From NCBI RefSeq assembly GCF_018977255.1, contig NW_024705561.1, forward strand, positions 1 to 34,512: a stretch of 34,512 nucleotides of DNA. Reading direction: 5' to 3'. Positions within the stretch are counted from its first letter, which is position 1. Every line of letters starts with the position of its first letter. This DNA is from Callorhinchus milii (Eukaryota). Below the pieces are notes generated by a model. It made no database searches and was not told the DNA's origin. It saw nothing but the letters and a program-made list of their open reading frames with translations. Position numbers and translations under genes: made by a program. Below, one piece after another: positions 8,070 through 30,414 of the stretch.

Positions 8070-8078
8070 TCAATTTAT
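8070..8078 (-). CDS. Probable IgH TM2 exon coding part (ATA AAT TGA = I-N-stop)
   Basis: Strong acceptor CTTTTATTTTCCAG followed by two codons and a stop in phase 0, the usual TM2 architecture, 542 bp past the TM1 donor; AATAAA follows. Residues differ from canonical VK. Confidence 0.6.
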   Translation of the reverse strand: MN

Positions 8079-8620
8079 CTGGAAAATAAAAGCAAATATA
8101 TAATGAATGATTTCAGCCGAGATAGAGAATTCATGTTCAGGCATATGTTTAATGTTCTATATATATATATCAACACAGACACTAACACACTAAGAAGAAT
8201 AAATACACAAAAACAAATACAAATAAACAAACACACACACACACAGTCACACATACACGAATCCAACTGATTGTCTTTTAATTTTTAGTTGCTTGCTGGG
8301 AACTGTGGCAGACAGAACGATTTCATGATGCTTTAAATTGTCCACAATGTACAGACAGAGGTACATAATCTGTAGAGATCCATTAGCCCTTGCCTAGTCT
8401 ATACCAGGTGAGCATATCTCAGGTGCGATAGGGTGTGTAATGGAGAGGATATTCTCATCACCTTCACACAGCCCAGTAACAAGGAACTTGGCCTAAAAAG
8501 AAAGGGAAAGTTCTCAGCAGAGTGGTGGCAATGAGAATGACAATGAGGGTTCCTATGGAACAAGTATTCAACATCAGCTGCTACATCATATCATGGCGTC
8601 AAATAATTTATTCTCATCAC

Positions 8621-8751
8621 CTTAATTAAAGTGACGGCTGCGCTGTACATAATACTCAGGAAGAAGAGGATGATGAAGGTGGAAGCAGTAGGCCACAGGT
8701 TGTCACTTGGTACTTCTTGAAAACCTTTCAGCATCATCTCGGTTGGGAAAT
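8621..8751 (-). CDS. IgH transmembrane exon TM1: (D)FPTEMMLKGFQEVPSDNLWPTASTFIILFFLSIMYSAAVTLIK
   Basis: Acceptor TTTTTTTTATCCTAACAG; phase fits the Cmu4 internal donor; CART motif TASTFxxLFxLSxxYSxxVT; donor AAG|GTGATG. Confidence 0.92.
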
Positions 8752-10680
8752 CTGTTAGGATAAAAAAAAGGAAATATCTTTAGAGGGGATTCAAACCTGA
8801 GGCCTTTCTGCTTTCAACGTATTATTGTTAATGTATATGCATTTTCCCAGTTGATCACGGGCTCCCTCACTTTAATAAACTGCACGTTCCCTTCGATCAA
8901 TTTTTCTAAATGTTTAGTTTTAACAGAAGTAAAGGAATCTTGGTTTTATTTTTTCTTCCTCACAATTAATGAATCCAAAAAAGAACTGGGGGAACATTTT
9001 GGGAAATTAAAATTCGTGGAATAACAGAAGGATGGAAATACTACCATTGAGATTCCGCTGTTAGAAAATGGACATATCGTCCCCAACCATCCAATTCCTC
9101 CTTTCTGCCTATATTGTACGTTTGAGATATTGAGATATTGAGATAAAGCATAATATATTCTAAAATATCTGAATTTATGAATTGACTAATCCTTCATATG
9201 TTACAGTGGCTTTCCTGCATGTTTTATCCCGTTTGTATGGATACAATCCTCTTTCGTTGCTTCAGTCTTTGAAGACTTCATGGATTTAAATGCTTTGGTA
9301 CGACTCTCTTCAATTTTTCTTTTACTTTCTGTTTTTAGAAGTACAGCAACAATATTTGTAGCTGTTCGCTGCAGCGCCAATCACAGGCATTATTTTCATG
9401 GTCTTTGTGTAACTGCCCAAAACCCTCTCAGCAGCTCTTATGTCCTTTGTGTGATAAATTGTCCAGAACCACATGTAGTGATCCACTCACAATCCCGTTA
9501 ACTTGAAATGTCATTGACAGTCGATTAACTTTGCGAAAATCACAGAATCTGTTTCAGTGATCTTCCGATACGTTTTCCAATCGACGTGTCCTCCAAGTTT
9601 TTTGCCATTCCACTTATAACAGAATTATTTTGCTGCTATTCCTACAGTGATTATTTTACTATAAATATACTTCAACAAACTGGTGTCTCAACATTGAACT
9701 ACATTTCCACCTCTCTGGAAACTCAGTTAAAATGTCTGTTACATTACGCAATTCCCCAGGTTATTCCTCAATTTGTCAGCGTCCCCTACTCTTTCATCAT
9801 CAACGTTTTTATAAATGGCACCATTTCTATTTCAAAATGGCTGATATTGTTGTAAAGCAATAGAACAACCAGCAAAAACATTTGTGTAAATCAACTAAAC
9901 AGATTGAGGTATAAGTGAACAGGGTTCATCCCTGAGGGCCATCAAGTGTGTGAGGGGCCTGGGTTGGTGTGAATGTAGTTAAGTGCGTGCGAGACTGGGT
10001 GGAAGTGTCTGTGTGTGAGTTAGTGTGGGCCTGGGTGGATATGGTTGTGAATGAGTGTGCGAAGGTCTCGGTGTATGAGTGCAAATGTGGACTTGGGTGG
10101 ATTGAGCGTGTGTGAAGTTTGTGAATGAGTGTATTTATTTACAAAGGCGTGGCTAAGCGAGTGCTCAAGTGAATATGTAACCGTATCCAGATCTTTTCTG
10201 TGGAACAAGTATCATTGTTACAGGAAATTTACCAAAATGGCCACAGTTTACATCTGAGAAGTTGTTTCGTGTGGAATGCGATGCTGTTCAGTGATTGAGA
10301 AAATATCCTGCAAGGGAAAAGGTGTAGCTGTGCTGTGCAATTATAAAACAAACTGCAAATAAAATTCGTTTTGAGATTGGATTATAACCAGTGATGTTGA
10401 ATTAGTGGGGACTTTATTATCAACTTATTTTTTTTGGGGGGAGGGTTGTGTGTGGGTGGTGGGGCGTAGGGGTGTGGGGTGGACGCGCTGGTCCGCCCGG
10501 CGTATGACACATGTGGAAATATATCACCACGCTTAAGTGTAAATACGAAAATGACTGCGGTAATAACTTAATATTAGCTTTTCTTCCAAAAAAAATGCAT
10601 CAGTCCTCACGCTGGAAAATATCTGTTTGAATAATTTTAAATCACTCCGAAGTACCTGACACGTCAATAAAACAATGATC

Positions 10681-10686
10681 TTTATT
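10681..10686 (-). terminator. Poly(A) signal for the secreted IgH transcript
   Basis: AATAAA on the minus strand ~83 nt after the tailpiece stop codon. Confidence 0.75.
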
Positions 10687-10768
10687 TGATTTAATTGTTG
10701 AAAACTGACAATGCAATGGCAAGAAGGTGGGTGCACAAAAGGATAAGCAAGATGGTATTGAGAGACAC

Positions 10769-11160
10769 TCAGTGACACGGATTCACGGTGTCCATCAGGA
10801 CAAGTGCAAGGTTTACAAAACTCGGTTTACCGCTGGATTTATTTACGGTTCTGGTCAGGGTCTTCAGTGGGAACGTTTCGTGGCCCACCACACATGAGTA
10901 GGAGGGTCTTCTGTTCCACTCATCGACTGAGAGGGTTAACATGCTGTACATGGAGTAGTTGAGATCTTCACTGTCTGCCATCACCTCGGTGTTTCTGTAC
11001 TTGTTGGCATCAATCAACTGGTCATTCACAGTCCACTGCACAAAGATCTCTTTGGGAGCGAAGTCCTTCACCAGGCAGGTCAAGGTGACAAACTGCTGAG
11101 CAGCCATTTCTTCTGCCGAGGGGAGGAGCAGATACACTGAAGGTTGTTTTGTGTACACAA
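10769..11160 (-). CDS. IGHM-like: IgH constant exon 2 (IgM Cmu4-like C1-set domain) plus secretory tailpiece GKPSFVNLALVLMDTVNPCH
   Basis: Acceptor TTCTTCCTACAG; PSVYLLLP...TLTCLVKDFAPKEIFVQW...YSCVVGHE; internal donor G|GTAAA at 10831/10830 for TM splicing; penultimate tailpiece Cys; stop at 10769-10771. Confidence 0.96.
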
Positions 11161-11650
11161 CTGTAGGAAGAATGCAATCAGATCAATACAATGATGGTGT
11201 CAATCATAGAATATTTTGAAGCATCAGATCTTGCAGAACAAGCTGAGAATAATGTTTGTGTCTCTGTTAAATCTGTGCTCAGTGGTTTGTAATTGTTGGT
11301 GTGACTAGGAACATTGGTGTGGGTTGAAATCCCCGACAGGACTTTATTATATGCACCCAGTGACCAGCGGTTCAGATATGGTAACTCTGCTCCCTGAGAA
11401 CATGTGTAAACATCCTCCAGGTGATGGTTAGATTCTTGTTGATATAATTCATGTGGGTGAATGTACTTAACAAATTTTATCTATAAATTGTTGTCCGACG
11501 TTCGTGAGAGATTATAAATCTATCGAAAGACAAACAGAAAAAGAAGCAAACAGAGAGCTGATCATTGTATTCCCAGTTGTTTCTGTTGATTGAAATCTGA
11601 AATTACAATAAACAAATAAATCATTTATTTCCTGAAATATGGCTACTCAC

Positions 11651-11962
11651 CTTTCCTCTTAAATGTCTTTTCACCGATGGGAGTTGGGATATCTTCATGA
11701 TTGGCAAGGCAGAAGAATTCTTTCCCACTCTTCCAGTCTTGTGTAGAAACGTTTAATTTACTGATCACTTCCTGAGGCTCAGTGGCAGACGTTTTCCCAT
11801 ATCCAGACTGTAAATGTGTCTTTCCTTGTGTCCAAGTCACGTTGACGTCAAGTGGTGCATTGGCCACGACACATGTCAGCGTTACAGTGGACTCCATTAA
11901 AACCTGTTGCTGCGAGGGTGGCAGGAAAGAGACCTTCACACCCCCAGTGGGTTGCTCACATT
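11651..11962 (-). CDS. IGHM-like: IgH constant exon 1 (IgM Cmu3-like C1-set domain)
   Basis: Acceptor TTTTCCTTTTCTAG, donor G|GTGAGT, 312 bp, phase 1/1; (E)CEQPTGGVKVSFLPPSQQQVLMESTVTLTCVVANAP...W...LNVSTQDWKSGKEFFCLANHEDIPTP resembles chondrichthyan Cmu3 (recognised from memory, not aligned). Confidence 0.94.
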
Positions 11963-12819
11963 CTAGAAAAGGAAAAGACACATGAAACTGGATTAACAGC
12001 CAATATCCAGGATTTCATATTCGGTCAGTTAAACAATACTGTTCATGAATATTCTCACACTGTGGGTGAGCTGAACACAGATTGCTGATTCCGAATATGC
12101 TCATCATTTGGTGTTGGAATAATTTACTGGAATACTGAACAAGACTTCCTGAAGGACTGCGTGATATTGCACCTGTTGAGTTTCAATTCCCTCTGACTGA
12201 ATACCACTCAGGAATAAACACGTGTATTGGTTGACTTGTAACTGTGCATTTAACTGTATACCTTCTCGGATTAACCCAAATTCACTCTTTGTGTCCAGGA
12301 AACAAAGTGGAAGTAATTGTTGAGGAAGTGTGTGGTATAGCTCTGCGGATAAAAGGCTGTAGATTGCGGCCCGATTTCTTCATGTTGCTCAGTTCAATAA
12401 ACTTGGGGTCAAAGCTCGCATGTGTATTGCTTTCATTGAAACACCAAAAAGGGGCGCTACACAAATGAAGGTAGCATTGTCAGGCCAAGCAGGTTCTCTG
12501 TTTGTATGTGTGTGTGTTCATGTGTGTGTATGTATGTATGTATGTATGCAGTTTTTAGAAAAGCCGCTGAAACTAAACTGTTGCATCAATTTCCTAATCG
12601 TCTGTTTCATTTGCTAAAATATTTTTGTTTCAAGGTTACTAAGACGTTTGCGTAATCTTAAATTTTGATGCAATCGTCAGAAGATTTCAAACATATTTCT
12701 TTGCGGCTCTGATATGTATTAAAACAAGTTACTCTGCTCAGATTGATGACAGAATCGACACAGTCAATGGCCACCAGACAGCCGATGTGTTTTGTTAAAA
12801 TAGTACATTAAATATTGAT

Positions 12820-12950
12820 AAGAATAATATCACTTGCATTGGAAATAGCGTCTTATCAAGTCTTTGAGATATTTCAATGCGCTTCACAGAATACAGTGTG
12901 AAGTGAAATCAGTCTATATTGTCTGTGCGAAAAATATTTGATTGACTGTT
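12820..12950 (-). mobile_element. SINE 3' tail fragment in the J-C intron
   Basis: Reverse complement reads TGAAGCGCATTGAAATATCTCAAAGACTTGATAAGACGCTATTTCCAATGCAAG, the shared tail. Confidence 0.65.
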
Positions 12951-13224
12951 GAAGAATTTTGATCCCTCTTTATTTTGTAATCTACAAAATTAGAAAACGA
13001 TTAAAATGGTTAGGTTCAGTGTTTACATGAGGAATGAAGGACTGCAATCAGTGTTGTGCCCAGGACACGGAAATACCCAACATATCTATTGGTATTTTTG
13101 TCGCAATCAGCTGTGAAATGGTTAAATAAAGGCAGAAGCCGCTGTCCGGCGTTTGATGTTAGTGACGGTGCATTGCCTAACGGGCAAAGCAATATTACAT
13201 TCACATTTGAAACTATAAATAGAA

Positions 13225-13605
13225 TATTCCTTGCATTTGTTATAGCGACATATCACGTCTTTGAGACGTCTCCAACTGCTTCAAAGAATACACTGTAAAG
13301 TGAATTCACTGTATGTTTGAGGGCGAAATGCGGCATCCAAATGCGTACAGCAGTTTTCCACAAACAGTCGTGGATTCAGTGACAAATTTATTGTTAATAT
13401 TTTGAAGAGAGTAATACTTCCGGGGAAGCAATCGGTTGATTGACTAACAGGTGTGTTGCTACGTACTGTAAGGCAAACCGAATTGTTGTTGTGAGTGTGG
13501 AGTAAGTAGACTTTCCTGACTTTTCGCCCTGCCCGGGAATCAAACACAGGTTGTCTATCCTGCGAGGCGAGTGCTCTAAACTCTGAGCTATAGGACTCCA
13601 CAGAG
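13225..13605 (-). mobile_element. Full-length tRNA-derived SINE in the J-C intron
   Basis: Head TAGCTCAGAGTTTAGAGCACTCGCC...GTTTGATTCCCGGGCAGGGCGAAA; tail GAGACGTCTCAAAGACGTGATATGTCGCTATAACAAATGCAAGG. Confidence 0.8.
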
Positions 13606-14656
13606 TGGAAAACATTCTGCTTTGCTTCACAGTCTGTATTACCCTGAATTGTGTTAGATCCATGTGGTGACAGTTGAATGTCCTGTTGTCACGCTGCATT
13701 CATGCCACACAGGCTGACAGACAGAGGCCGGTGATATAAATATATAAAACAAGCAGTGCTGGTGTCTGTGGGTCTGTTTCCAGCCCCTGCGGTCACCGAC
13801 TTGTTAGCTATCAATAAATTAAATTAACTAATGATACAAATAGAGACATTATTCACTTCTGAGATCCAAATCCTCAAGTAATAATAAACATTTGTAGATT
13901 ATAAAACTTTACTTTAAGATTTCGCGGAAGTGTATAATAATCTTAAATTTACTTTAAATTTGGATTCCGGTTCTTCTTAAGAATTCGGGAAACCTCTTTT
14001 TAGAAATCAATCTGAATTTAACAAATATTTACAAATCTGCGGGATTGACGTCAGTTCATGTTTCGACCTCTGGAAAGATATTTTGTGAAACAAACCTTCA
14101 CATTGCTCTTTCCTATCCCTCGATCTGAAGGTTAAACTTGAACCGAGCTCACAGCCGCTCTCCCCACAGTGAGATATCCCCGTTCAGCAATTTGCAATTA
14201 CACTGTTCAATGCCGTTTACTCAGGTCTCACACACAGTCACAGCCTGAACCCTCACATCTTAAACACACATTGTTTCCATCCAATTACCCACAGGTCACT
14301 CCATGTTCTCCTTCCCTCAGCCTGAAGCTGTCAGTAACCGCACAGCAGCTCACACATTCTCCATCCACATCACACACGATGCATTCTACATTTTGCAAAG
14401 TAACTCACGGACACAATTCCCTGCAGCTCAAACAGTTACACAGAATACCTAATTCATGTATTTACAGTGGAATGAGCTACTGATTCCTTTCACGCTCATC
14501 TCTGCTGAGTCTGGAGTTTGAGCTGGTCAGTTTTGGTACCATTAGCTGCATGTCTGTGACCAGTTTCGCTGTGTGTTAACCATCTCATAAACAAATGTAT
14601 CTGATACATTGCAGCGTGTTATTCAGAGTTTACCATTTGTTTACTCAAAAAAAAAA

Positions 14657-14664
14657 ATTTGCAT
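14657..14664 (-). promoter_or_regulatory. Perfect octamer (ATGCAAAT) in the J-C intron
   Basis: ATTTGCAT on + strand; function is inferred only. Confidence 0.45.
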
Positions 14665-15709
14665 TTATTTCTGCTGATCAGTTAATGCAAAACAGGAAAC
14701 TCATATTTGTAGATCAACAGATACATAGAATAACTAAAGCATGTGATTACAGTAAAATGAGAGATTTCTTCCTTTCACCCTCATCTCTGCCAACTCTGAA
14801 GTTTTAGATAATCAACTACGATATCATTAGTTTGATGTCAGCGACCAGTTTCGCTTTGTGTTGAACATGTCATTAATAATTGGATCTCTTACAATGCAGT
14901 CTGCTATTCAAACTTGAACACACGTTTGATGAATACATCTGTGTTTTTCTACACGATAGTTAGTGTAAAGCGGAAAGCTGATGATTGTAGATGAACACCG
15001 ACCTGTGTACACTCTGAGGAATGGAAGTAAGTTTAAATCAACCGCTGGCGATATCAATTGAAATGAAGCATTAAATCAAAGAGTAGCTGAATGTTATCGT
15101 GACTGGTGTATGGGCAGCTGAGGAAAAGAAACTGTGAGCAACACGTTAATGCTAATATTACTTGAAATAAAAACATTCACTCATATTTCTGTAACATTCG
15201 TGCAGATTTGAGTTGTCAGTCACACCGCAGCAATGTAAACCCGCTTTACTCTCTCACTCACCTCCTCCCAGATGAACATCTTTAACCCACAGCAGCGTTC
15301 CTTATATTAAACAACAGATTGAAATACATATCGGAATCGATCCGATAACCTTCGCGTCACTCATCCCACGATATTCAGGTCCTCATTTCCAAATCTTGGG
15401 CACAGTTTCAAACACTTTAATAGAACTCTCGGCATCATTATACCCGAAACCCAGCAGCTGCCATTCACCGCGAACAAACATTATGGAAAGTCCTTTAGAG
15501 TAATCACCAAAAATATCACCAACAAAAACTAAAGAGAATAGTACATGTTATTGAAAGCAATGGCAGGTAAAAATCTTTAGCGTCGCTTAAACTGTGAGTT
15601 TTCCCGTCCACGAAGAATTCATTACATTATATAGGTGTTAAAGTGAAAAAAAACAAATATACAAAGAGACAAGTTCAGTGAATTGAGTGAGATAATGTCT
15701 GCTACTCAC

Positions 15710-15748
15710 CATCCGTCACAGTCAACACGGTGCCTTGACCCATGTAGT
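15710..15748 (-). CDS. IGHJ: IgH J segment (Y-M-G-Q-G-T-V-L-T-V-T-D)
   Basis: GxGT-xx-TV motif, 23-RSS directly upstream, phase-1 donor G|GTGAGT. Confidence 0.93.
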
Positions 15749-15787
15749 CACTGTGCTACAGTCAGTGTGCTGCCCACTGCAACAACC
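15749..15787 (+). promoter_or_regulatory. J 23-RSS (CACTGTG / 23 bp / GCAACAACC)
   Basis: Heptamer 15749-15755, spacer 15756-15778, nonamer 15779-15787. Confidence 0.88.
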
Positions 15788-16124
15788 TGCTGTGCGGGCA
15801 GGACACACAAACACAACCTTACTGTAAATGTTGGCTCTCCCAAACCAAATACAATACCCAATATATGTCTGTAACGTTCTGAAAACAATTGCTTGACTCT
15901 GTGTTTACCTGTTAAATGTTTGCATCTTTGCCAGTTTGCAGTGTTCATGTCAAACACGTTTTATTGTGACCAACAGATTGGAGATGAAATGTAATGTTTT
16001 ATGTCTATTAAATCTGGCAATTTGCTCAGCGCTCGGCAGCATTTTACGAATAACAAATCCCCGCATATTCAGTGGGACTCACACAAGCGAACAGAGTGAG
16101 AGATTAGCTGCTTTGGTGTTGGAC

Positions 16125-16201
16125 GGTTTTTGTATTGACAGTTAATGCCGTGGTGTTTATCTCACTGTGCTGCAGTCAGTGTGCTGCCCACTGCAACAAC
16201 C
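16125..16201 (-). other. D3 segment (16153-16162, sense AGATAAACAC) with V-side 23-RSS and J-side 12-RSS
   Basis: J side: CACGGCA/12/ACAAAAACC (16152-16125). V side: CACTGTG/23/GCAACAACC (16163-16201). Confidence 0.85.
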
Positions 16202-16535
16202 TGCTGTGAGGACAAGGCACACAAATAAAATAGTAGTAAATGTTGGTTTCCCCAAACCAAATAAAGTGCACAATATATTTCTGTAATTTTCTGAAAACAA
16301 TTGCTTGGCTCTGTGTTTACCTGTTCAGTGGTTGTATTTTTGCCGGTTTGCAGCACTCATCTCAAACACATGTTGTTGTCAAGAACAGATTGAAGAATAA
16401 ATATGATGTTTTGTGTCTGTTAAAGTGGTAAAATCCTAAGCGATCGACACCATTTTACAAATGCCAGTTCCTCACGTATTCAGTGGGACCCACACAAGCG
16501 AACAGTGATAGAGATTAGCTGGTTTGGTGTTCAAG

Positions 16536-16601
16536 GGTTTTTGTATTGATTGTTAATGCTGTGTGTTGCTTGTCACAGTGATACACAATATGACAAAATC
16601 T
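16536..16601 (-). other. D2 segment (16564-16573, sense ACAAGCAACA) with 12-RSS on both sides
   Basis: J side: CACAGCA/12/ACAAAAACC (16563-16536). V side: CACAGTG/12/ACAAAATCT (16574-16601). Confidence 0.9.
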
Positions 16602-16916
16602 CCTGCACAGGACGAACTAACAAATATTGACCCGGAATTCCTGGCAACGGCTGGTCCTCAGTTCACAGAATCCTTTGATGACTCCTGTGATATTTCAGTC
16701 AGAATAAATTCTTATGTTTTCCAGAGACTTTCGTTTAATGTCCGAACAGATCCAGAGACGTCAATTTCGTTGAGTACCATCCTATAATCCAAATTAACCG
16801 CAATAAATCTGCTAAACACTATGTTATTATCGATTATCGATTATCGATTTTCAGGGCCATTTATTTCGGTGTGTCGGTGTTGTTTGATGACTGGAGTCAG
16901 CAGTCTCTGTGGCAGG

Positions 16917-16993
16917 GGTTTTTGTATGAGGAGGTGGTTGTATGCAGCATTGTGTCTTTTCTTTACACAGTGATACAGTCCAATACAAATACT
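16917..16993 (-). other. D1 segment (16955-16965, sense TAAAGAAAAGA) with V-side 12-RSS and J-side 22-RSS
   Basis: J side: CACAATG/22/ACAAAAACC (16954-16917). V side: CACAGTG/12/ACAAATACT (16966-16993). Confidence 0.92.
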
Positions 16994-17392
16994 GATCCCC
17001 CATATGTGTACAATATCGGCTGCCAAAATTCACTGAAAGTGACTATTCTCCTCTGACGTGACGCAGAATCTGTCTCATAGTTTCCTCATAACAACAGAAA
17101 CATTATGCAATTATTTCCAACAGCTTGTGACTTGGTGATGTTTTTGAACCGTCATTTATTGCGGTTCTTCCCACCTCAACAGCACAGTGTCACTGACTAT
17201 CTGAAATCACAGAATACTACAGCACAGATAAGCAGTTCATTCACTTAAATCAAACAACGATTCAATGTGCGGGATCTGTCAGATAATAAATGTATCTTCA
17301 GCTTTTCCTTTAAACTTGGGCACAAAACAGCATTGACACCATGTTTGCCCCTCAGTCAGTTTAGGGTGGGAGGGGCTGCCTTTCTCCCCTTG

Positions 17393-17431
17393 TGTATTTG
17401 TAGGAGTTCAGCCCCGTTTCGTCTCACTGTG
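17393..17431 (-). promoter_or_regulatory. V 23-RSS (CACAGTG / 23 bp / ACAAATACA)
   Basis: Consensus heptamer directly after YYCARA, 23-bp spacer, near-consensus nonamer. Confidence 0.93.
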
Positions 17432-17737
17432 ACGCTCTTGCACAATAATAGGTGGCGGTGTCGTGCACTGTCGGGCATTTGATGATCAGATCGAAGATGC
17501 TTTGGGAATCTTCTCTGATGACAGTGACACGGTTTTCAATCCCGGACCCGAATGACTCGATGGATGAGCCGTCATGTACGAGCAGCTTTTCCCGCTGCTT
17601 CCCGGGAAGCTGCCGGAACCAGCCCGTGTAATTTCTGCTGAGATCAATCCCATTGGTTTCACAGGTCAGTCTCAGGGCCTGGCCGGTTTTCCCGGTTAGA
17701 GTCGGCGGCTGTGTGAGAACCAAATCTGCCTGGACAC
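17432..17737 (-). CDS. IGHV: IgH-type V exon, open: VQA-DLVLTQPPTLTGKTGQALRLTCETNGIDLSRNYTGWFRQLPGKQREKLLVHDGSSIESFGSGIENRVTVIREDSQSIFDLIIKCPTVHDTATYYCARA
   Basis: Acceptor TTATCATTTACAG; canonical Cys22, Trp36 and DTATYYC; full-length CDR2; ends at RSS. Confidence 0.96.
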
Positions 17738-17853
17738 CTGTAAATGATAAACGGTCAAAGATTAATGACTGTGAAATGTCCTGTTTCTGTGACATTGCGG
17801 AGAGAATAACACCGACACAGGAACAGTGAGACTGTCAGAATAATAGCACTCAC

Positions 17854-17899
17854 GGGAGAAGGCAGCCAGCAACACACTGAGAGAAATCAGGGTCCTCAT
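17854..17899 (-). CDS. IgH leader exon MRTLISLSVLLAAFS(R)
   Basis: ATG at 17899, hydrophobic signal peptide, phase-1 donor C|GTGAGT, 116-bp intron in frame with V. Confidence 0.93.
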
Positions 17900-17990
17900 G
17901 TTTCTGGGCACTTGTCAGAACTGAGACTTGAGCCGAATAACCGAGGGACAGAGAGCCGCCGGACAGATGGCTTCAGTCCACAGTGACCGG

Positions 17991-18066
17991 TATTTAACAA
18001 GGTCCAGTGGGGCATGTGTTTGAGAATCTACCAATAGCTCCAGGACTGAGGGGAGTCACGTGTCAC
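17991..18066 (-). promoter_or_regulatory. Putative V promoter: TATA-like TTAAATA (17991-17997), CCAAT (18031-18035), GTCACGTGTCAC E-box/CRE-like element (18055-18066); no octamer seen
   Basis: Motifs lie 90-170 bp upstream of the leader ATG; lack of an octamer fits what is established for chondrichthyan VH promoters. Confidence 0.5.
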
Positions 18067-18149
18067 ATTCCCTCTGACTTATACAGATCAGAAATTGTAC
18101 CTTTGTGTTGAAAGGTACACTATTTCAGGTAGTGTGTGATAAATATGTG

Positions 18150-18740
18150 GAAACGTGTCCCTGGGATGATGGTGAAAGCAGAAAGTTTTGCTCTATTAAA
18201 AGCAAGTTAGTTGGATTACTTTTAGGAAATAATATCTGGGAATGTAATATTTTATTTGGAATATTACACGTCATTCCATTGCCTGGATGTTGGAGGCATA
18301 GAGTCGACAGTCATTGGCCCTCTTTCGTCTATCAATGCCTACGTATTTAATATAAAAATTACAATGGATACAATGCCGTATCAGGTCAATAAAATGGCTC
18401 AATGCGCTTCACAACATCACACAGCACTTCAGAAAAGTATGTTGTGGCCGAAAATGTAGATTGTATCCTCTCGTTGTGCAATCCAGAACAAGGAGCACCA
18501 TCTAAATTAGACCTAGGCTATTTAGGAGTCAATGGACAAATGGTGGTGGAAATCTGGAACTCTGCCCCAAAGGGATGTGAATAGTGGATCCATTCATTTT
18601 TTCGGGACTTAGATGGATAGATATTTGAAAAAAGCTTATCAAGGAATATGTGGCAAAGGCGGTTATTTGGACTTCAGGTATAGATCTGCTTTGTTGTTAA
18701 AGAATGAGGAACAGTCTCGAGGTCCTGAATTGCCTACTGA
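18150..18740 (+). mobile_element. Degenerate CR1 3' fragments
   Basis: GATGGTGAAAGCAGAAAG...AAAAGCAAGTTAG and TCTGGAACTCTGCCCCAAAGGGATGTG...GATGGATAGATATTTG, typical of CR1 3' ends. Confidence 0.55.
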
Positions 18741-19359
18741 AACGTATATGTTCTTATGTAAAATATTGACTATTTTCTATATTTGAAGAGGTTCTGAACT
18801 GCAGCAGATGATTGTCGCGAATTTGTATGTCTTCTCGTGTCCCTTTTGTGCATGATGACATAAATGGCATTGTTTTCTCCACCGCCGTTTTGCTGGGTAT
18901 ATGTTCATAATACCCTATTATTTTCCTTGCCATTTTAGTAACTGCTTCTCTTTTGTTCCTTGTGAGCATGTTTTTATGTCTTACACCTACTATTTGCTCT
19001 CTTTTTCCTTACATAGAGTGATCGTCCTTGGGTAACTCCTCACAATATTTATCTTTGGTCTCATGGAAAATATGTAGAAACTCAGCATTTGGGACACATC
19101 TGGTCGTACTCGTTACTGCCTTCAGTCCCCATATTTATTGAAATCATAACCTTGATTGGAGATGAAATAGTGTAGTGACTGTGATTTTTTTCATTGGTGG
19201 CTCACGCTTTCAAGTCGGGCGTGAATTGATCACTTGGGGTAAGAAGCCAGATGGAGACGGCTGCTGCTGCAATGGTAACCATGTGAAATATAAGGACTGT
19301 CACACTCCTTTAGGACAAGCAGAGAAGAAACTGAGGAGAAAAGTGAAAATAAATCAATG

Positions 19360-19650: not shown

Positions 19651-20384
19651 TATGCCAACTACAAGGACTGTGAACCCCTGAAAACCTGCAGCTGACAATA
19701 AGGAGGAGGAGAGTATAAAACGGACTCTGATCAGACACAATGTTTTGTTCTCCTTGACTGTTTGATGCTCATGTTCCAGTTACCACATGCATTGTAACTC
19801 AGAAACTATATCACTGGCGTAATGAAGCAGAGATAAACAGACTCATTATCCTGAACATAATCATATAGCCTTACACTCAACTTGTGATATGGCCTGTTAT
19901 TCTCTGGATAGATAAGCCGGTTTCAACACATCAGTAACCTTACATAAAAAATAAATCAACTGCCTTTATTTAGCAACCGACATAAATTACGGCAAGTCCT
20001 GTGTCTCGCTATATTGTTATATTGGTTTGGAATTCATTTTCTTGCCCACAGTTCAAGACTGCGAGTTCACAGAAAAAGATTGTTTGCAGATTTTATACAA
20101 CAGCTTAAGCTGAAAAGCAGTTTATGTACAAAATGCTAAACAAGTTGCTTATTTTCATGTGTAAAGCCTTTTTGTTCTGCTCACTGTGGAAACCCGCTTG
20201 ACAGGAAGACTCAGACTAATTTCGGGTGGGAAGGAAACTCAGTGCACAATATTCAGGAAGCAGCTGTGATTGTGTGCAGTCAGTCAGTGATTATCTTCCT
20301 GCCCTCACACCCGGAGCCCACAGCCTGACCTTTCATATGTCATTTGCCTTCACACCTGCCACAGCAGCAACAGCAGCAGCTGCA

Positions 20385-20654
20385 GCTGGTCATCTCAAGC
20401 TGCTAAGTCATCGCAATCCGTCAGGTCATGTCCACCTGTCTGGTCATCTCAAGCTGTCAGGTTATCCCTAAATGTCATTTCATCTCAAGCTGGTTGGTCA
20501 TCTCAAGCTCTCTGTTCATCTCAGTCTGTCTGGTCATCTCAATCTGTCCGGTCATCTCAAACTGTCTGGTCATCTCAAACTGTCTGGTCATCTCAAACTG
20601 TCAGGTCATCTCAAGCTTTCTGGTCATCTCAAACTGTCTGTTCATCTCAAGATG
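20385..20654. repeat. 18-bp minisatellite, 15 copies, no indels (consensus TCTGGTCATCTCAARCTG)
   Basis: Counted unit by unit; reads (SGHLKL)n in one + frame with one in-frame TAA. Confidence 0.95.
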
Positions 20655-21079
20655 CGTTGAGGAAGGATTTCGGAAAATATAATAAACAACAGTCAGCAGC
20701 CACTAAGCACCAGTGGCTAAGTGTGTGTCTGTGTGTTCCTCTGTGAGTGGGAGAGAGTATGTTTCTTTGTGTGTGTGTGTCTGAGTATGTTTTTTGCTGT
20801 GTGTACGTCCTCATACTGATATTCACGATGCAACCTCTATATAGTTTGATATCACCAGTGAGACTCTCTATGTATGTGCGTTTGTAGCTCTGTGTGTGGC
20901 TCTGTGTGTCTGTGTGTGTGCTGAGTGGCTGTGGCAGGTGTTATTAGCTGTGGCTGGTGTTTTAGTGGCTGTAGCTGGTGCTCAGAAACAGAAGGAGACA
21001 ATTCAGGCAATTGAGTATTTTCCGCTATTCTATAAGATCATTGCTGATCTGCAGCTCAAATCCAATTACTCGCCTTTGA

Positions 21080-22392: not shown

Positions 22393-23294
22393 TCATGATT
22401 TAATCAGCTTCAGCACTGGATTGATAACATACGCAACCATATTCTTAATTTCTTACCTGAATTTTTTTGTGTCACAGCATAAATACATATTTTTGTGGCA
22501 CTGCTTAAACGCTGAGGCATTCTTCCGGAATGATACCGAATAAAGGCTGGGTCATTATAATCTGTGTAAATATAGCTTGCTACTTGCCCACATATGATAT
22601 GTACAAAAGAGGTCATCCAAATTCAGATGAAAGTGCCCGATAGAGTGAATAGCAAAATAATAGATTTTTTCATGTTCTCTGTCTCTGGGATATTGTTACT
22701 CACATAATGTTTCTGGCTGAGAAGAACTCCGCAAATTCTGTTTGCCACAATAATGTGTCTGATAATTAGAGCTTTGAAGAGCAAAATCAGCGAATATGGA
22801 ATTAATGGGATAAAAATGATATCTACCAGATTAAATGATGCCCAAACGCATCTCGTGTGAAAGGTTTTTATCAGTTTACAGAACCAGGGAACATTATTTA
22901 TTACGAAGTTAAATTCAAACGCAAAACACCAGGGAATGTCGCTCAGACAGCTCAGTGTACACTCAATCCCTATAAACAAGGCTGCCGTTCTCTGGGTGCA
23001 ATATTGTCGTTTCAGCTTCTCACAGCAAATAATCACAAAACGATCAAATGTGAAAGCGACTGTTAACCAGACAGAGATGTCAGAAGCTGTAGCATTGGGG
23101 GAAGCTAGCGGTAGTACATGTAGCAGTCAAATCCAGGAATCCAAAAGGAAAATACAGAAAATTAATCCGAGTTTATATCACAGCATCGATAACCACGAGC
23201 AGATCTGTCGTTGACGTGGCAACAAGGTAACGAGTGCCACAGGAGGAGAGACCATACTTTCCACGGGAGAGGATCGCAATGGCAAGTAAGTTTC
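22393..23294 (-). pseudogene. GPR139/GPR142-like class A GPCR pseudogene (main exon)
   Basis: Acceptor CTGCAG then NLLAIAILSRGKYGLSSCGTRYLV...; homologous to 28884-29800; several in-frame stops (e.g. VI*, FI* at 22623-22625) and frameshifts. Confidence 0.9.
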
Positions 23295-24499: not shown

Positions 24500-26260
24500 A
24501 TACTTGCTTTAAATCAATTGAGCGTGAAAATCTGAGTCAAACGAAACCACCTATCTGATAGCTTACCAAGCCCTCTGATTTTAACGTTGTGACCCCTGGT
24601 TTAATTTCTCCAACCGGGGGCCACAATATCCCACTATCTACTCTATCATGCCCTTTGATGATCTTATTGGTTTCTATAAGATCTCCTATAATTCTTCTAT
24701 ATTCGGGAAAATATAGGCCCAAATTGCTAAGTCTATCCTAGTAACTCAACCCCTTCATCCCTGGCACTAACCTAGTAAACATACGCTGATCCGCTCCAAG
24801 GCAAGTACATCCTTCGTTCAATGAGGAGACCAAAACTGGACACATTGTTGCAGGTGTTTGTCTAACCAGAGCCCCAACCAGTTGCAGCAAGACTTCCCTA
24901 CTCTTGTACACTAATCCTTTCATAATGAATGCTAACATACCATTCGCCTTCCTAATCACTTGCTGCACCTGCAGAAGAACTTTCTGTGATTGTTGTGCAA
25001 GGACACCCAAGTCCTTCTGGACGCTAAAACATTCCAATCTCTCCCATTCTAAAAAATAACCCGCTCTTACTATTTTGCTCCTAGGAGGATGACTTCGCAC
25101 TTCCCTACATTATACTTAATCTGACACTAACCTACCTGCCCATTTACTTAACCTGCCTATGTCTCGCTGCATTTTTGTAATGCCGTCCTCTGTGTTGGCA
25201 CTTCCTCCTAGTGTTGTGTCATCCGCGCATTTAAATATGTTAACTTTGATGTCCTCATCTGGATCGTTGATGAAGATGGTAAATAGCTGAGGCCCAAGGA
25301 CTGATCCTTGTGGAACGCCACTGGTCACATCCCGACAATCTGAAAAGGACACGTTTTTCCCTACTCGTTGTTTCCTACCCGTTAACAATTCTCCAATCCA
25401 CGTTAATATGCTCCACCCAATTCCATGGGCCCTTATCTTTCGGATTAACCTTTTATGCGACACCTTATCCAATGCCTTCTGGATGTCCAAGTAGACCACA
25501 TCCACTGATTCACCTTTATCTAATTTACTGGAAATATCCTCGAAAAGCTCTATGCGATTTGTCAAACATGACTTCCCTTTTGTCAAGCAGTGTAGACTTG
25601 GCCTAATTATATTGTGCTCTCCTAAATACCGCACTACGACACCCTTAATCAACGATTCTATTTTTTTTCCTATCACTGATGTGAGAATAACAGACACATA
25701 GATACCCACCTTTTCCTTTCCACCTTTTTTACACAGCGTTGTGATATTTGCAATCTTCCAATCCATAGCGATTATGCCAGAATACAAGGAATTTTTGTAA
25801 GATCAGTCACCAGGCCTCAACTAGCTCATAAGCTACCACTTTTTAAACCCTGGTATGCAAGCCATCCAGAACAGGGGGGTTTGTCACATTTTATTGCTAA
25901 CAGTTTCCCCAGCACCAATTCTCTGCTAATGAAAATTTCCCTAAGTTGGCCCCTGTCCTTATCCTATTGGTGCATCTCTATTGTTGGCAGATTTGTTGTG
26001 TCTTCTCGGGTGAAGACAGATGCAAAGTACCCATTTAAGGACTCTGCCATGTCCTTTTTTCCCATTACAACTTCTCCCCACTCTGATTGAATTGGACCTA
26101 AGGTTTACCTTCACTAGCCTTTTCCTTTTAATGTATTTGTAAAAACGTCTCCAATCAGACGTAATGGTCCTAGCTAGCTTAACCTCATACTCTTTTACTC
26201 GCTCTTAATTACATTTTTTTGGGCTGCTTTCTAAAATTTTGACTGGTTACTGAAACTGCT
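24500..26260 (-). mobile_element. 5'-truncated CR1 LINE, frameshifted reverse transcriptase ORF2
   Basis: RT motifs YLDIQKALDKVSHKRL, GVPQGSVLGPQLFTIFIND and degenerate CADDT; continues as VQQVIRKANGMLAFI...RFTRLVPGMKGLSY in another frame. Confidence 0.93.
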
Positions 26261-26369: not shown

Positions 26370-27155
26370 CTTTGACATTCAGTCGGATTTGCATATTGCT
26401 TTTCGGCCCGTGCCAGGGGCTCCGCACCTCAGTTGCTGGCAGCATCAGCCTCAATGGCTGCACACTCAACCTCATTGAGCCAGTAAGAAACCGGGGTGTC
26501 TTATTTGACCACATGTACGTCATGAACGGCACTGCCTGCCACCACCTCCGCAACATTGCCTAATTCCGCCTGTGCCTCACCCTTCAGACTGCCGAAACCC
26601 TCACCCACGCATACGTCACCTCAAGGCTTGATTACTGGAACAACCTCCTCATTCGGCCTTCACAACTCTTCCCTTCACAAGGTGCAGATCATCCAAAATT
26701 CCGCAGCCCATGTAATCTCACGCACAGGCTCCGTGACACCATTATTGCCACCCTCGCCCGACTCCACCGGCTCCCCATCCCTCAGAGGATCGAGTTCAAG
26801 ATCCTCGTCCTCACCTTGACTCCCCCCCAACATGCCCGCTCCCTCCGTTCAGCGGGCTCCAGTCTCCATGTCTCCCGCCCGACCCACGCTACCGTCGGTG
26901 GCCGGGCTTTCTGCCTCTATGCTCCCACACTCTGGAAGTCCATCCCACGGTCCCCTTGCCTCGCTTGCTCGCTCGCATCCTTTAACGCCCATCTCAAGAA
27001 TCATCTTTCTACAGTGCCTTTGGTCTCCGTCCCACCACTCTGCCTTCCCTCTACGCTACACCATCCCTCCCGCATCCTCTAGCATCGACAGCTGATTGAT
27101 CAATGCTTTGGGACTTACTCCCGACGAGAAAGGCGCTCAATAAATATACTTTTTT
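26370..27155 (+). mobile_element. L2 LINE 3' fragment
   Basis: VRNRGVLFD and LHKVQIIQNSAA motifs, CCCTCAGAGGATCGAGTTCAAGATCCTC, and tail GCTTTGGGAC...GAAAGGCGCTCAATAAAT. Confidence 0.88.
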
Positions 27156-28883: not shown

Positions 28884-29800
28884 TTAACGAAATACTCTAA
28901 CGACTAAAATAAACGGAAATTTTACCGCTTTACTCAGCTCCTCTCTGAACTTAGTCTGAGTAGCTGCATAAATACATGTGTTTGTACAGGAACTCAAAAG
29001 CTGCAGCATGTAGCCAGTTTCATAGAAAATAAACAACGGTTCATTCGGATCTGTGATGTTACCTGTTTTCGAAATCCTCCCGTATAAGAAAAAGGCTACT
29101 TGTGTTATCCACAATAATATAAAACTGGAGGAAACAGCAAAGAGTAAAACGATGGACTTCCTTCGGTTCTTCATCTCTGGATCACTGTCACTCGCTCCTC
29201 TGTTCCTGTCCCCATAACAGTGTCCCCACAATCGACTGCGGGCTTGACTGGCCACCAGTATGTGTCTGACTGTCAGGGCGTTGAGCAGCAAAATCAGAAA
29301 GAATGGGATAATCGGAGTTAAAGTGATATCGAACAGATCAAACGCTACCCAAATGCGAGAAATGAAAAAGTCTACTTTAAATTCGCAACCCCATGGCATA
29401 TTATTTTCTGTGTGCGATGATGTCCACACAAAATACCAGGGAATGTTTTCCCCAATCAAAAACATGATGACAACGGCTATTATAATACACGTCGATTTTT
29501 CAGTGCAATATTTGTTTTTCAGTTGTTGGCAACAAATAGCCACATATCGATCAAAAGTAAAAGTCACTGTAAGCCAAACTGAAGTTGTCGTTGATGTTGC
29601 CATCATGAAAAATAGAAGCCGACATACATGAGTAATGAACACAAATGAATTTGGAAAGTGATAAGGAATAATACGCCTGAAAATTACTTCGGTGGATACC
29701 AGCATCAGATCCGCCACTGACATGGCCACCAGATAGCGGGTGATGCATTTTGAGAGACCGCACTTCCCTCGAGACAGGATCACAATTGACGCCAGGTTAG
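28884..29800 (-). CDS. GPR139/GPR142-like rhodopsin-class GPCR, main coding exon (first exon not located)
   Basis: Acceptor TTCTCTCCCTGCAG at 29801; open frame to stop at 28884; TM2 DL, TM3 FDRY, TM6 FILLW, TM7 NTCIY. The N-terminus and most of TM1 are missing, so an upstream exon is expected. Confidence 0.88.
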
Positions 29801-30414
29801 CTGCAGGGAGAGAAGAAGAGAAATGGCAATTTATCACGATGGATTGTTACAATTTGTATGGAATTGTTTAAACGAAAGATGCGGTCTCTATTTAACAAAG
29901 CAGTAGTCTTTCCTGGTCAGTCCTTGTTCTCGAACAGTGTTGCCCCATTTTCCATCACCAAACCTGTCTGCATCACCTGCTAAATTATGTGCCATTGCCT
30001 TCAATACATCAAGCTGATTGTCCTCAGTTAATCCATGGTGTCTCAAGAGGTAAAACCTGTTATAGACTCTAAAAATGCTGATGTTAGACTGGCTGACACG
30101 GAAGAATGGAAGGACGGACGGTCGGAAGGACGGATGGAGTTAGACTGATTGACTGACTGATTAATTTGCATGGATTTTAGACTGAATGACTGGACTTCCG
30201 TTTATTTGATGGACCTGTTCTCCACTTAGAAAACGTGCAGTGGAAATAACTAGCTGACAGGCCCCTGATGTACATTTCATATGGAAGGATATTCAGAAAA
30301 TTTAAGCCAGTTTATTTTTATTTTCTTCTCTGCCCTCAGCACATATGTATTTGCTTTTCCACCTACACCAAACGAAACATCATTGATTATATCCTCATTT
30401 TTGGTGTCCTGTAT

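Follow-up and report, generated by a model that had tools for sequence, protein, structure and literature searches.

A chimaera IgM-derived heavy-chain cluster that retains only Cmu3- and Cmu4-type constant exons and probably encodes a light-chain-free antibody

Organization of the cluster

The window analysed here, a 34,512-nucleotide (34.5 kb) stretch of the genome of Callorhinchus milii (elephant shark, a chimaera), contains an antibody heavy-chain (Ig) cluster that runs uninterrupted along the minus strand from 17899 to 8621 (Table 1). Its order is leader, V, D1, D2, D3, J, Cmu3, Cmu4 with a secretory tailpiece, and TM1, so that every element of the complete L-V-D-D-D-J-Cmu3-Cmu4-tail/TM gene proposed from an initial reading of the DNA (the original prediction) is present, with the Cmu3 acceptor exactly where it had been placed, at 11962. 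All exons are open, every junction is in phase 1 and the splice phases are compatible. Pfam recognizes a V-set domain and two C1-set domains (5.6e-12 and 3.6e-22 for the two C exons), matching the predicted chain of one V and two C domains. The sole N in the window lies at 4600, outside the locus, which therefore contains no assembly gap.

Table 1. Features of the heavy-chain cluster, in order of transcription
Feature	Position	Strand	Details
Leader exon	17854..17899	-	encodes MRTLISLSVLLAAFS + 1 nt; donor C/GTGAGT
V exon	17432..17737	-	ends ...YYCARA; Pfam V-set 1.3e-11
V 23-RSS	17393..17431	-	CACAGTG-23-ACAAATACA
D1 unit	16917..16993	-	D1 16965-16955, TAAAGAAAAGA; 5′ 12-RSS 16993-16966; 3′ RSS 16954-16917, 22-nt spacer
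D2 unit	16536..16601	-	D2 16573-16564, ACAAGCAACA; 12-RSS on both sides (5′ and 3′)
D3 unit	16125..16201	-	D3 16162-16153, AGATAAACAC; 5′ 23-RSS; 3′ 12-RSS, weak heptamer CACGGCA
Tandem duplication	15748..16585	-	two copies, period ~412 bp, 77-90% identical
J unit	15710..15787	-	J 23-RSS 15787-15749; J 15748-15710, YMGQGTVLTVTD; donor G/GTGAGT
J-C intron	11963..15709	-	3.7 kb; without CH1 or CH2 exon or remnant
Cmu3-type exon	11651..11962	-	starts ECEQPTGGVKVSF; Pfam C1-set
Cmu4-type exon	10769..11160	-	with secretory tailpiece GKPSFVNLALVLMDTVNPCH and stop; Pfam C1-set
TM1 exon	8621..8751	-	(D)FPTEMMLKGFQEVPSDNLWPTASTFIILFFLSIMYSAAVTLIK; 70-83% identical to TM1 of C. milii IgM gene models P0022, P0027, P0029
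Candidate TM2 exon or 3′ region (uncertain)	8399..8492	-	ag/GCCAAGTTC...

The leader is 81% identical to that of conventional C. milii IgM, and the V is identical to UniProt A0A4W3GAQ7; its FR2 reads WFRQLPGKQREKLL (codons 17621-17580), and FR3 contains an additional Cys (17477-17475). Within the Cmu4 exon, a cryptic TM donor (AGCG/GTAAAC, between 10831 and 10830) would lead to TM1. Poly(A) signals lie at 10695 and 10686. The tailpiece has kept its penultimate Cys and lost its N-glycan sequon (NLA in place of NIS or NVS), which leaves its polymerization behavior uncertain. No match to the octamer ATGCAAAT, with up to one mismatch allowed, was found on the gene strand in the ~900 bp upstream of the ATG. 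A search for a canonical TM2 exon (VK-stop) found none, so the 3′ limit of 8070 given in the original prediction is unsupported; a candidate exon starts at 8492.

Recombination signals and the origin of D3

We scanned for recombination signal sequences (RSSs), allowing up to two mismatches in the heptamer (with CAC fixed), up to two in the nonamer, and spacers of 12 or 23 ± 1 nt. Seven of the cluster's eight RSSs were recovered, all within 15749-17431; the whole window gave 15 matches, whereas 50 shuffles averaged 2.3 and never exceeded 6. The eighth, 3′ of D3, is weaker and is a duplicate of the D2 3′ RSS. The earlier description of open exons, compatible phases and eight recognizable RSSs is thus borne out, although its D1 3′ spacer had to be corrected to 22 nt. 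All eight signals obey the 12/23 rule, and RAG-type joining is possible in the arrangement V(23)-(12)D1(23)-(12)D2(12)-(23)D3(12)-(23)J. Under this rule D2 is obligatory and D1 and D3 can be skipped, giving two to four joining events per assembly. The three D segments are A-rich, with open frames that encode Lys, Glu, Arg, Thr, Ser, Asn, Asp and His; D1 and D3 each have a stop in one reading frame.

D3 was created when the D-J interval was duplicated in tandem with a period of ~412 bp: one unit extends from the D2 3′ RSS to the D3 5′ RSS, and the other from the D3 3′ RSS to the J RSS. The duplicated 23-RSSs are identical at 49 of 50 positions, versus ~80% for the surrounding interval, indicating constraint or gene conversion acting on the recombination signals.

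The constant region consists of Cmu3 and Cmu4 only

The two C exons are 76% (Cmu3) and 79% (Cmu4) identical to their conventional C. milii counterparts, and their joint alignment to human Cmu3-Cmu4-tailpiece (8gzn_A residues 221-453, E 2.5e-50) runs from end to end. Based on these domains, the mu tailpiece and the mu-type TM exon, the constant region is derived from IgM by sequence homology, and the matches to human and C. milii Cmu3 and Cmu4, together with the C tree, bear out the initial assignment. That tree and the V tree below had been proposed as checks. In the C tree, the C region of the window forms a clade with P0004 and P0007 (100/100; stem 0.16) apart from conventional Cmu. Among the subfamily-specific changes of this C region is the tail NLALVLMDTVNPCH, which is absent from conventional clusters.

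The absence of CH1, also claimed at the outset, held up when the whole 34.5 kb window was searched by tblastn with CH1 and CH2 of C. milii and CH1 of the ratfish: no CH1 or CH2 remnant was found, and the matches obtained were either chance (E >1) or cross-hits to Cmu4. Likewise, the J-C intron contains no stop-free Ig-like segment, and no Cmu2-like sequence, whether kept or duplicated in the place of CH1 as in the ratfish type, is present in the window. None of the database proteins carries the J-Cmu3 junction.

The VL-contact face of the V domain

Conventional C. milii VH and this V share 57% identity. At Kabat positions 37/44/45/47 the V has F/Q/R/K, and Trp103 of the J is replaced by Met, whereas the conventional VH domains retrieved have V or I37, G44, L45, W47 and W103, a set that is near-invariant in sharks, lungfish and Xenopus and largely kept in teleosts. 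The hydrophilic FR2 face and the loss of the J Trp that had been read from the sequence are thus both confirmed. In the V tree, all V genes with this KQRE-type FR2 fall into one clade (99/96) apart from conventional holocephalan VH. Across this holocephalan clade the four FR2 positions are F/Y/K, Q, R/Q and K/N/Q/S/I. It includes the old UniParc entry UPI0000114065, in which V-D-J is spliced straight onto a Cmu2-like domain; both this protein and another clade member, P0005, still have Trp103.

CDR2 is as long as in conventional holocephalan VH. AlphaFold predicts, with moderate confidence (pLDDT 71), the complete set of nine V strands, C′ and C″ among them, with strands at residues 46-52 and 57-59, and the best PDB matches of the model are nanobodies and VH domains (TM 0.72-0.81).

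Comparison with known antibody systems

An IgM-derived heavy-chain-only antibody (HCAb) class is already recognized in chimaeras, its protein hardly studied, and a 2022 paper by Anumukonda et al. (Eur J Immunol 52:247) is reportedly dedicated to it. A 2024 review lists "Holocephalin IgM HCAbs". The CH1-less IgM cluster of the spotted ratfish (Rast et al. 1998, Immunogenetics 47:234, as summarized by Flajnik, Deschacht & Muyldermans 2011, PMC3149040) lost CH1 along with a CH2 duplication; its product was predicted to be an H-chain dimer without light chain, and the protein had yet to be studied as of 2011 (PMC3149040). The two-C-domain, Cos5-type holocephalan cluster named in the original prediction does not agree with this literature, which describes CH1 loss with CH2 duplication. 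Our locus resembles the ratfish and other holocephalan HCAb clusters in its holocephalan host, its derivation from IgM, its absent CH1 exon and a V in the same divergent clade (Q44/R45-type FR2). In contrast to the ratfish cluster, with its duplicated CH2, Cmu2 is gone here too and Cmu3-Cmu4 alone are left; three unjoined D segments, Met103, the extra FR3 Cys and the loss of the tailpiece sequon also set it apart from the holocephalan clusters. The host, C. milii by its top protein matches (V 94-98%, C 97%), and the position of the V in the holocephalan clade (99/96) agree with the suggested membership in this little-studied class, and we consider it likely that the cluster belongs to the holocephalan, IgM-derived heavy-chain-only lineage.

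Elasmobranch IgNAR, too, is of heavy-chain-only design and comes from a cartilaginous fish, and it shares with the locus its cluster organization, three D segments and as many as four joining events (three D segments and four rearrangements are quoted for IgNAR). However, the IgNAR V lacks CDR2 and the C′-C″ strands, whereas a full-length VH is found here, and IgNAR has three or five IgW-type C domains rather than Cmu3 and Cmu4 with an IgM tailpiece. The full-length CDR2, the C′-C″ strands and the two Cmu-type C domains rule out IgNAR, as originally stated, and the C. milii genome is reported to lack IgNAR. As the third D arose by local duplication inside an IgM-type cluster, the resemblance is convergent.

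Like the camelid IgG2/IgG3 HCAbs, the mature chain would lack CH1, FR2 positions 37, 44, 45 and 47 have changed from hydrophobic to polar or charged, and the V model is structurally most similar to nanobodies. The camelid CH1 exon, however, is present but skipped through a splice-site mutation, whereas here it is physically absent, and camelid HCAbs are hinged IgGs from a translocon shared with conventional VH, whereas this is an IgM-like chain with a tailpiece from a dedicated cluster. The physical absence of CH1 and the mu-like isotype rule out a camelid-type HCAb, and the VHH hallmark substitutions are analogous, not homologous, to those of camelids.

The conventional chondrichthyan IgM cluster (V-D1-D2-J-Cmu1-4) has homologous leader, V and J framework, Cmu3, Cmu4, tailpiece, TM1 and cryptic TM donor, with 57-83% identity between the parts of this cluster and C. 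milii IgM. It differs in having four C exons rather than two, two D segments rather than three, and unreplaced VL-interface residues; our locus cannot be assigned to it, lacking the four Cmu exons, the two-D layout and G44/L45/W47/W103. Nurse shark IgM1gj (P0031, 473 aa) is another heavy chain of IgM origin that falls short of four C domains, but it has CH1, a conventional FR2 (GQGLEWL) and W103, is germline-joined, and is missing only the Cmu2-type domain.

Predicted product and alternative explanations

CH1 is the domain that BiP retains, that pairs with CL and that carries the light-chain-binding cysteine. With CH1 and CH2 deleted, the J donor would splice directly to the Cmu3-type exon, and the splice sites and phases predict a V-Cmu3-Cmu4 chain of ~39 kDa whose tailpiece has a penultimate Cys. 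Alternative splicing from the cryptic Cmu4 donor to TM1 would yield a membrane form. Lacking a BiP-retained, CL-pairing domain, the chain could, from general Ig biology, exit the ER without a light chain. F37, Q44, R45, K47 and M103 are predicted to turn the former VL-contact face hydrophilic, so that the V should act as an autonomous single binding domain, by analogy with camelid VHH. H-H dimers would be expected from the ECEQ Cys at the start of Cmu3, which conventional clusters also have, and the tailpiece Cys may allow polymers. Given the loss of the two V-proximal constant domains together with these camel-nanobody-like changes, the likely product of the gene is an antibody without light chains.

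Ig clusters present in many copies are easily mis-assembled, and the locus comes from one assembly only, so collapse or wrong joining of similar IgM clusters might have fused the V-D-J of one cluster with the Cmu3-Cmu4 of a second, with loss of CH1-CH2. We regard such an artefact as very improbable. The locus is ungapped, and its C region carries subfamily-specific changes, including the tail missing from conventional clusters. The V and C phylogenies agree, each placing the window with P0090/P0004 and then P0007. An independent gene model, P0007/P0091, links a sister V to a sister C of the same subtypes, and the intron stretch lying 150-250 nt upstream of Cmu3 is shared by P0004. This repeated pairing of V and C subtypes in paralogous loci makes an assembly chimera unlikely and, with the P0004 intron match, implies that the architecture is a family trait.

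The cluster could instead be genuine yet silent, a relic that lost CH1-CH2 by deletion and has ceased to rearrange or be expressed, its intact look being due to slow evolution or to gene conversion by neighboring clusters. The missing octamer and TM2, the odd A-rich D segments with their stops and the lack of transcript-derived protein in the databases would fit, as would the report that the genome of C. milii evolves the most slowly among vertebrates (PMC3964593). We nevertheless think it unlikely: exons, splice sites and all eight RSSs are kept, the design recurs in at least two paralogues, the changes cluster at VL-interface hallmark positions rather than at random, and a subfamily so far from conventional clusters (stems of 0.16 for C and 0.24 for V; V identity 57%) has acquired zero disabling changes. 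A slightly smaller chance attaches to an expressed chain whose V has a pairing partner despite the lack of CH1: a light chain, some other V-bearing chain, or a second copy of itself in a V-V homodimer. Without CH1 there is nothing to pair with CL and no light-chain-binding CH1 cysteine, and positions 37, 44, 45, 47 and 103 are all replaced by residues that we class as polar or charged; in camelid VHH, such replacements abolish VL pairing. In favor of such pairing are the Trp103 kept by the clade relatives P0005 and UPI0000114065, the precedent of IgM1gj as an IgM heavy chain shortened by one C domain in a cartilaginous fish, and the homodimers formed by UrIg2 V domains (PMC12227049).

Returning to the light-chain-free reading, we tentatively raise the possibility, which we hold to be less probable than not, that the V-Cmu3-Cmu4 clusters (the window, P0090/P0004 and P0007/P0080/P0086) form a distinct, not yet published sub-class of chimaera heavy-chain-only antibodies, with two C domains only, three hydrophilic D segments (the third from D-J duplication), a replaced Trp103, a subfamily-specific FR3 Cys and a non-glycosylated tailpiece. 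If so, the tailpiece might build multivalent "mini-IgM" polymers of single-domain binders.

Organization of the cluster

The minus-strand cluster is a real, intact, rearranging IgM-derived locus that lacks both CH1 and Cmu2, and it is a member of the known holocephalan heavy-chain-only lineage. Its exons are all open and its junctions are all phase 1, as judged from a six-frame list of open segments and from reading of the splice sites, confirming the original prediction of a cluster with open exons and compatible phases. Because the sole N of the window is at position 4600, no exon is concealed in a gap. Pfam assigns the V exon to the V-set and both C exons to the C1-set, and in the PDB sequences the two C exons are colinear with human Cmu3-Cmu4-tailpiece (8gzn_A residues 221-453, E 2.5e-50). 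By tblastn, identity to conventional C. milii secretory IgM (P0002) is 57% for V, 76% for Cmu3 and 79% for Cmu4; for TM1, identity to the C. milii IgM models is 70-83%. A TTAAATA box lies ~100 bp upstream of the ATG.

Features of the cluster (slashes mark splice boundaries)
Feature	Coordinates	Strand	Size	Details
Leader exon	17899-17854	minus	46 nt	MRTLISLSVLLAAFS, donor C/GTGAGT
V exon	17737-17432	minus		end ...TATYYCARA, adjoins V RSS CACAGTG-23-ACAAATACA
D1	16965-16955	minus		RSS on both sides, spacers 12 and 22 nt
D2	16573-16564	minus		RSS on both sides, spacers 12 and 12 nt
D3	16162-16153	minus		RSS on both sides, spacers 23 and 12 nt
J	15748-15710	minus		23-RSS before, G/GTGAGT donor after
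J-C intron		minus	3.7 kb	between J and first C exon
C1-set exons (Cmu3-type, Cmu4-type)	11962-11651 and 11160-10769	minus
Cmu4-type exon 3' end		minus		GKPSFVNLALVLMDTVNPCH-stop; poly(A) signals 75-85 nt further downstream
TM1 exon	8751-8621	minus		2 kb beyond last C exon; cryptic donor AGCG/GTAAAC within last C exon

A tblastn search of the whole window for a concealed or decayed exon encoding CH1 or CH2 (queries from C. milii and ratfish, E up to 10) returned only chance matches or Cmu4 cross-hits, and the six-frame list of open segments contained neither exon. The predicted absence of CH1 is thus borne out. The 3' breakpoint of the deletion appears to lie within ~30 nt of the Cmu3 acceptor.

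For the steps past recombination, we infer that J would splice onto the Cmu3-type exon (15710/11962), giving the junction peptide TVTD-ECEQPTGGVK and, as an illustration, a mature chain of ~353 residues (39 kDa) that has five N-glycosylation sequons, including one in CDR1. The Cys that opens the Cmu3 exon (ECEQ) is common to conventional clusters and is likely to form the bridge between heavy chains. The penultimate Cys of the tailpiece is retained, so polymers would be possible. In the subfamily formed by the window and its paralogues, however, NLA stands where every conventional IgM retrieved from sharks and chimaeras has an NIS or NVS N-glycosylation sequon, and the C-terminus is PCH rather than ACQ or SCQ (10769-10830, minus strand; the tail at this locus is NLALVLMDTVNPCH); sequon loss and the PCH end could alter polymerisation.

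A membrane form would use the conserved cryptic donor together with TM1. A pattern search for a canonical TM2 (VK-stop) exon was negative, leaving the predicted 3' limit of 8070 unsupported. The TM1 donor is directly followed by an AATAAA signal (8612; 8606-8621, minus strand), and the string AAGGTGATGAGAATA at the donor region is repeated ~165 nt downstream, at ~8440-8460 (minus strand), inside the candidate TM2 region.

Recombination signals and D segments

A simple scan recovered seven of the eight recombination signals (RSSs) within 1.7 kb, and the window as a whole held 15 RSS matches versus 2.3 expected from shuffles. The eighth, 3' of D3 (heptamer CACGGCA), is recognisable as a diverged duplicate of the D2 3' RSS, so that the eight signals originally described all stand, with one correction: the 3' spacer of D1 is 22 nt rather than 23. 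D3 itself originated by tandem duplication of the D-J interval, of which two ~412-bp copies (the D2-to-D3 and D3-to-J intervals, window 15748-16585) are 77-90% identical. Their 23-RSS portion is identical at 49/50 positions, which implies constraint or gene conversion acting on the signal.

Under the 12/23 rule, V (23) would join the 5' 12-RSS of D1 or D2, the D1 3' RSS (22/23) would join D2 5' (12), the D2 3' RSS (12) would join either D3 5' (23) or J (23), and the D3 3' RSS (12) would join J (23). These permitted joins make D2 obligatory and D1 and D3 optional, giving two to four joining events as in IgNAR, for which three D segments and four joining events are quoted in a 2014 review; the gain of a third D by duplication of the D-J interval also parallels IgNAR.

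D1, D2 and D3 are all rich in A, and their open frames encode charged or polar residues (KEK/KKR for D1, TSN/QAT/KQ for D2 and DKH/IN for D3); there is a TAA stop in one frame each of D1 and D3, and Cys occurs solely in inverted frames. D segments usually encode Gly, Tyr and Ser. Given this A-rich composition and these polar open frames, the CDR3s should be long and polar.

The V domain and predicted light-chain independence

We tabulated FR2 and J for every retrieved V-bearing protein. Conventional VH domains (from sharks, ratfish, elephant shark, lungfish and Xenopus) almost invariably have V or I37, G44, L45, W47 and W103, and those of teleosts are largely alike, whereas the holocephalan V clade to which the window belongs carries F/Y/K37, Q44, R/Q45 and K/N/Q/S/I47. 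Substitutions at 37/44/45/47 define the camelid VHH, and the locus is changed at the same four framework positions. At residue 103 the window has Met, and P0007, a related C. milii gene model, has Val; both the hydrophilic FR2 face and the loss of the J Trp noted in the original prediction therefore hold.

BiP normally retains CH1 until it is displaced by CL, and the light-chain-binding Cys is normally a CH1 residue. With CH1 physically missing and the hallmark positions substituted, a light-chain-free product is the reading best supported by the sequence. The hydrophilic-FR2 clade has support of 99/96 in the V tree, and it includes a very old UniParc entry, UPI0000114065, in which a rearranged V-D-J is directly followed by a Cmu2-like domain; this entry presumably represents the ratfish sequence from Rast et al. 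1998.

The AlphaFold model of the V exon, whose moderate confidence (pLDDT 71) led us to use it for strand count and fold class only, contains the complete V strand set, including C' and C'', and its best structural matches are nanobodies and VH domains (TM 0.72-0.81). These two strands, together with a full-length CDR2, exclude an IgNAR-type V. Membership of IgNAR is ruled out by V length and by the Cmu-type C domains, in agreement with the original prediction, and both IgW and IgNAR are reported missing from C. milii (2014 genome paper, PMC3964593).

An additional FR3 Cys (17477-17475, minus strand; DLIIKCPTV, approximately Kabat 82b) is limited to the V-Cmu3-Cmu4-type subfamily (the window, its V paralogue P0090, P0007, and the related V genes P0080 and P0086), the residue being Ser in every other holocephalan V gene. 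Since it lies at the membrane-proximal end of V, it might form a disulfide with the ECEQ Cys two residues past J, a putative pairing. Outside the window, four C. milii V genes of the hydrophilic-FR2 clade (P0082, P0083, P0084 and P0087) have an extra Cys ending CDR1 (YYCM), and P0082 has a further one in CDR2 (SDC). The pattern is reminiscent of the non-canonical disulfides found in camel VHH and in type II IgNAR.

Paralogues and integrity of the locus

The best matches of a large protein search were from Callorhinchus milii. The window V corresponds to UniProt A0A4W3GAQ7, and near-identical paralogues exist for V (P0090, 98%) and for C (P0004, 97%). On the C-region tree, the window, P0004 and P0007 form one group (100/100); a long stem sets it apart both from the conventional Cmu of C. 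milii and from a third cluster of sequences, which contains V-Cmu2-Cmu3-Cmu4 models. On the V tree, the window pairs first with P0090, and P0007 and P0080 join next (99/98). V and C thus have congruent histories, and the gene model P0007/P0091 independently pairs a sister V with a sister C. When the intron 150-250 nt ahead of Cmu3 is translated, P0004 and the window agree at 28/31 residues, and P0091 and the window share 3'-flank sequence. An assembly chimera is made very unlikely by the congruent trees and by the architecture common to the paralogues, and the trees, the P0007/P0091 linkage and the shared flanks argue against a one-off deletion. The derived characters common to the subfamily are the NLA/PCH tailpiece, the FR3 Cys (KCP) and the loss of J Trp103.

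It is also quite improbable that the cluster is a silent relic. What gives that reading some weight is that two large protein searches returned no chain with the J-Cmu3 junction, the matches being genome-derived C. milii models and conventional IgM cDNAs. The octamer ATGCAAAT (≤1 mismatch) was not found on the gene strand in the ~900 bp upstream of the ATG (17900-18800), its count across the window being at chance level, and the missing canonical TM2 points the same way. Against this, the locus is wholly intact in spite of substantial divergence, its changes are aimed at the VL interface, and its paralogues keep the same design, all of which speak against the relic reading.

An open segment of the J-C intron (12116-12208, minus strand; SGIQSEGIETQQVQYHAVLQEVLFSIP) is a coding 5' exon in the Ensembl/UniProt model A0A4W3GLZ0 (P0004), where it could reflect either an artefact of the model or an exon of sterile transcripts. 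Several C. milii models (P0005, P0010, P0092-P0094 and P0007/P0091) run straight through V-D-J (YYCGARSHDYADYWGQGT; YYCQIKTHDYVGRGT), which suggests germline-joined clusters of the heavy-chain-only antibody (HCAb) type. The P0005 group is V-Cmu2-Cmu3-Cmu4, CH1-less with Cmu2 kept.

Relation to known heavy-chain-only antibodies

Light-chain-free antibodies are a textbook case of convergence (camelid HCAbs and shark IgNAR) and the origin of nanobody technology; a chimaera IgM-derived HCAb is a third, independent solution, for which we found no protein characterisation in the accessible literature. As a germline template the locus is complete (V, three D, J, an Fc-like Cmu3-Cmu4, tailpiece and TM), and with it one can test whether CH1 removal plus FR2 remodelling is the general path to heavy-chain-only antibodies, whether a mu Fc of two domains can still form polymers, and whether chimaera V domains are usable as single-domain scaffolds. 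Two things limit its value: the class has been recognised before, and a 2022 paper by Anumukonda et al. (Eur J Immunol 52:247, PMC9590256), judged by its title and authors, probably covers the C. milii HCAb genes and D segments. A specialist would not be surprised by the locus, though its biology is attractive and testable.

The CH1-less ratfish cluster was predicted to encode a light-chain-less H-chain dimer, the protein being unexamined (PMC3149040), and "holocephalin IgM HCAbs" are listed in a 2024 review, so the holocephalan HCAb class invoked by the original prediction does exist in the literature; its two-C-domain "Cos5" type, however, is at odds with the published ratfish description (PMC3149040). 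Unlike the ratfish type, the locus lacks Cmu2 entirely, has three unjoined D segments, has Trp103 replaced, carries the FR3 Cys and has lost the tailpiece sequon. A 2014 review credits the 2014 genome paper with ~10 C. milii IgM genes, and Anumukonda et al. 2022 is cited as the origin of a single-domain IgM V from Hydrolagus. Outside Anumukonda et al. 2022, Rast et al. 1998 and the 2014 genome supplement, a keyword literature search found no further account of C. milii HCAb clusters. The locus may already be published, and it is somewhat doubtful that the two-C-domain, three-D subtype is still undescribed.

Other features of the window

Two neighbours unrelated to the Ig cluster are an intact 320-aa rhodopsin-family GPCR ORF (28887-29846, minus strand; 7tm_1 7.2e-24) and a second GPCR fragment (22626-23126, minus strand; 5.7e-08). 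Scans for tRNA/SINE and Rfam elements found no match in the window. There is a reverse-transcriptase fragment (25119-25802, minus strand; RVT_1 2.3e-17), and the open segments 574-1021 and 26564-27079 (plus strand) are repeated and have the motif PQRIEFKIL in common, making them probable retroposon copies. In a minisatellite-like stretch (20291-20743, plus strand), the translation repeats (V/A)(W/R)SSQ many times. Outside the window, the database entry P0040, deposited as an Aeromonas veronii "hypothetical protein" on a 742-bp contig, is a shark IgM Cmu3-Cmu4 fragment and almost certainly represents host contamination in a bacterial assembly.
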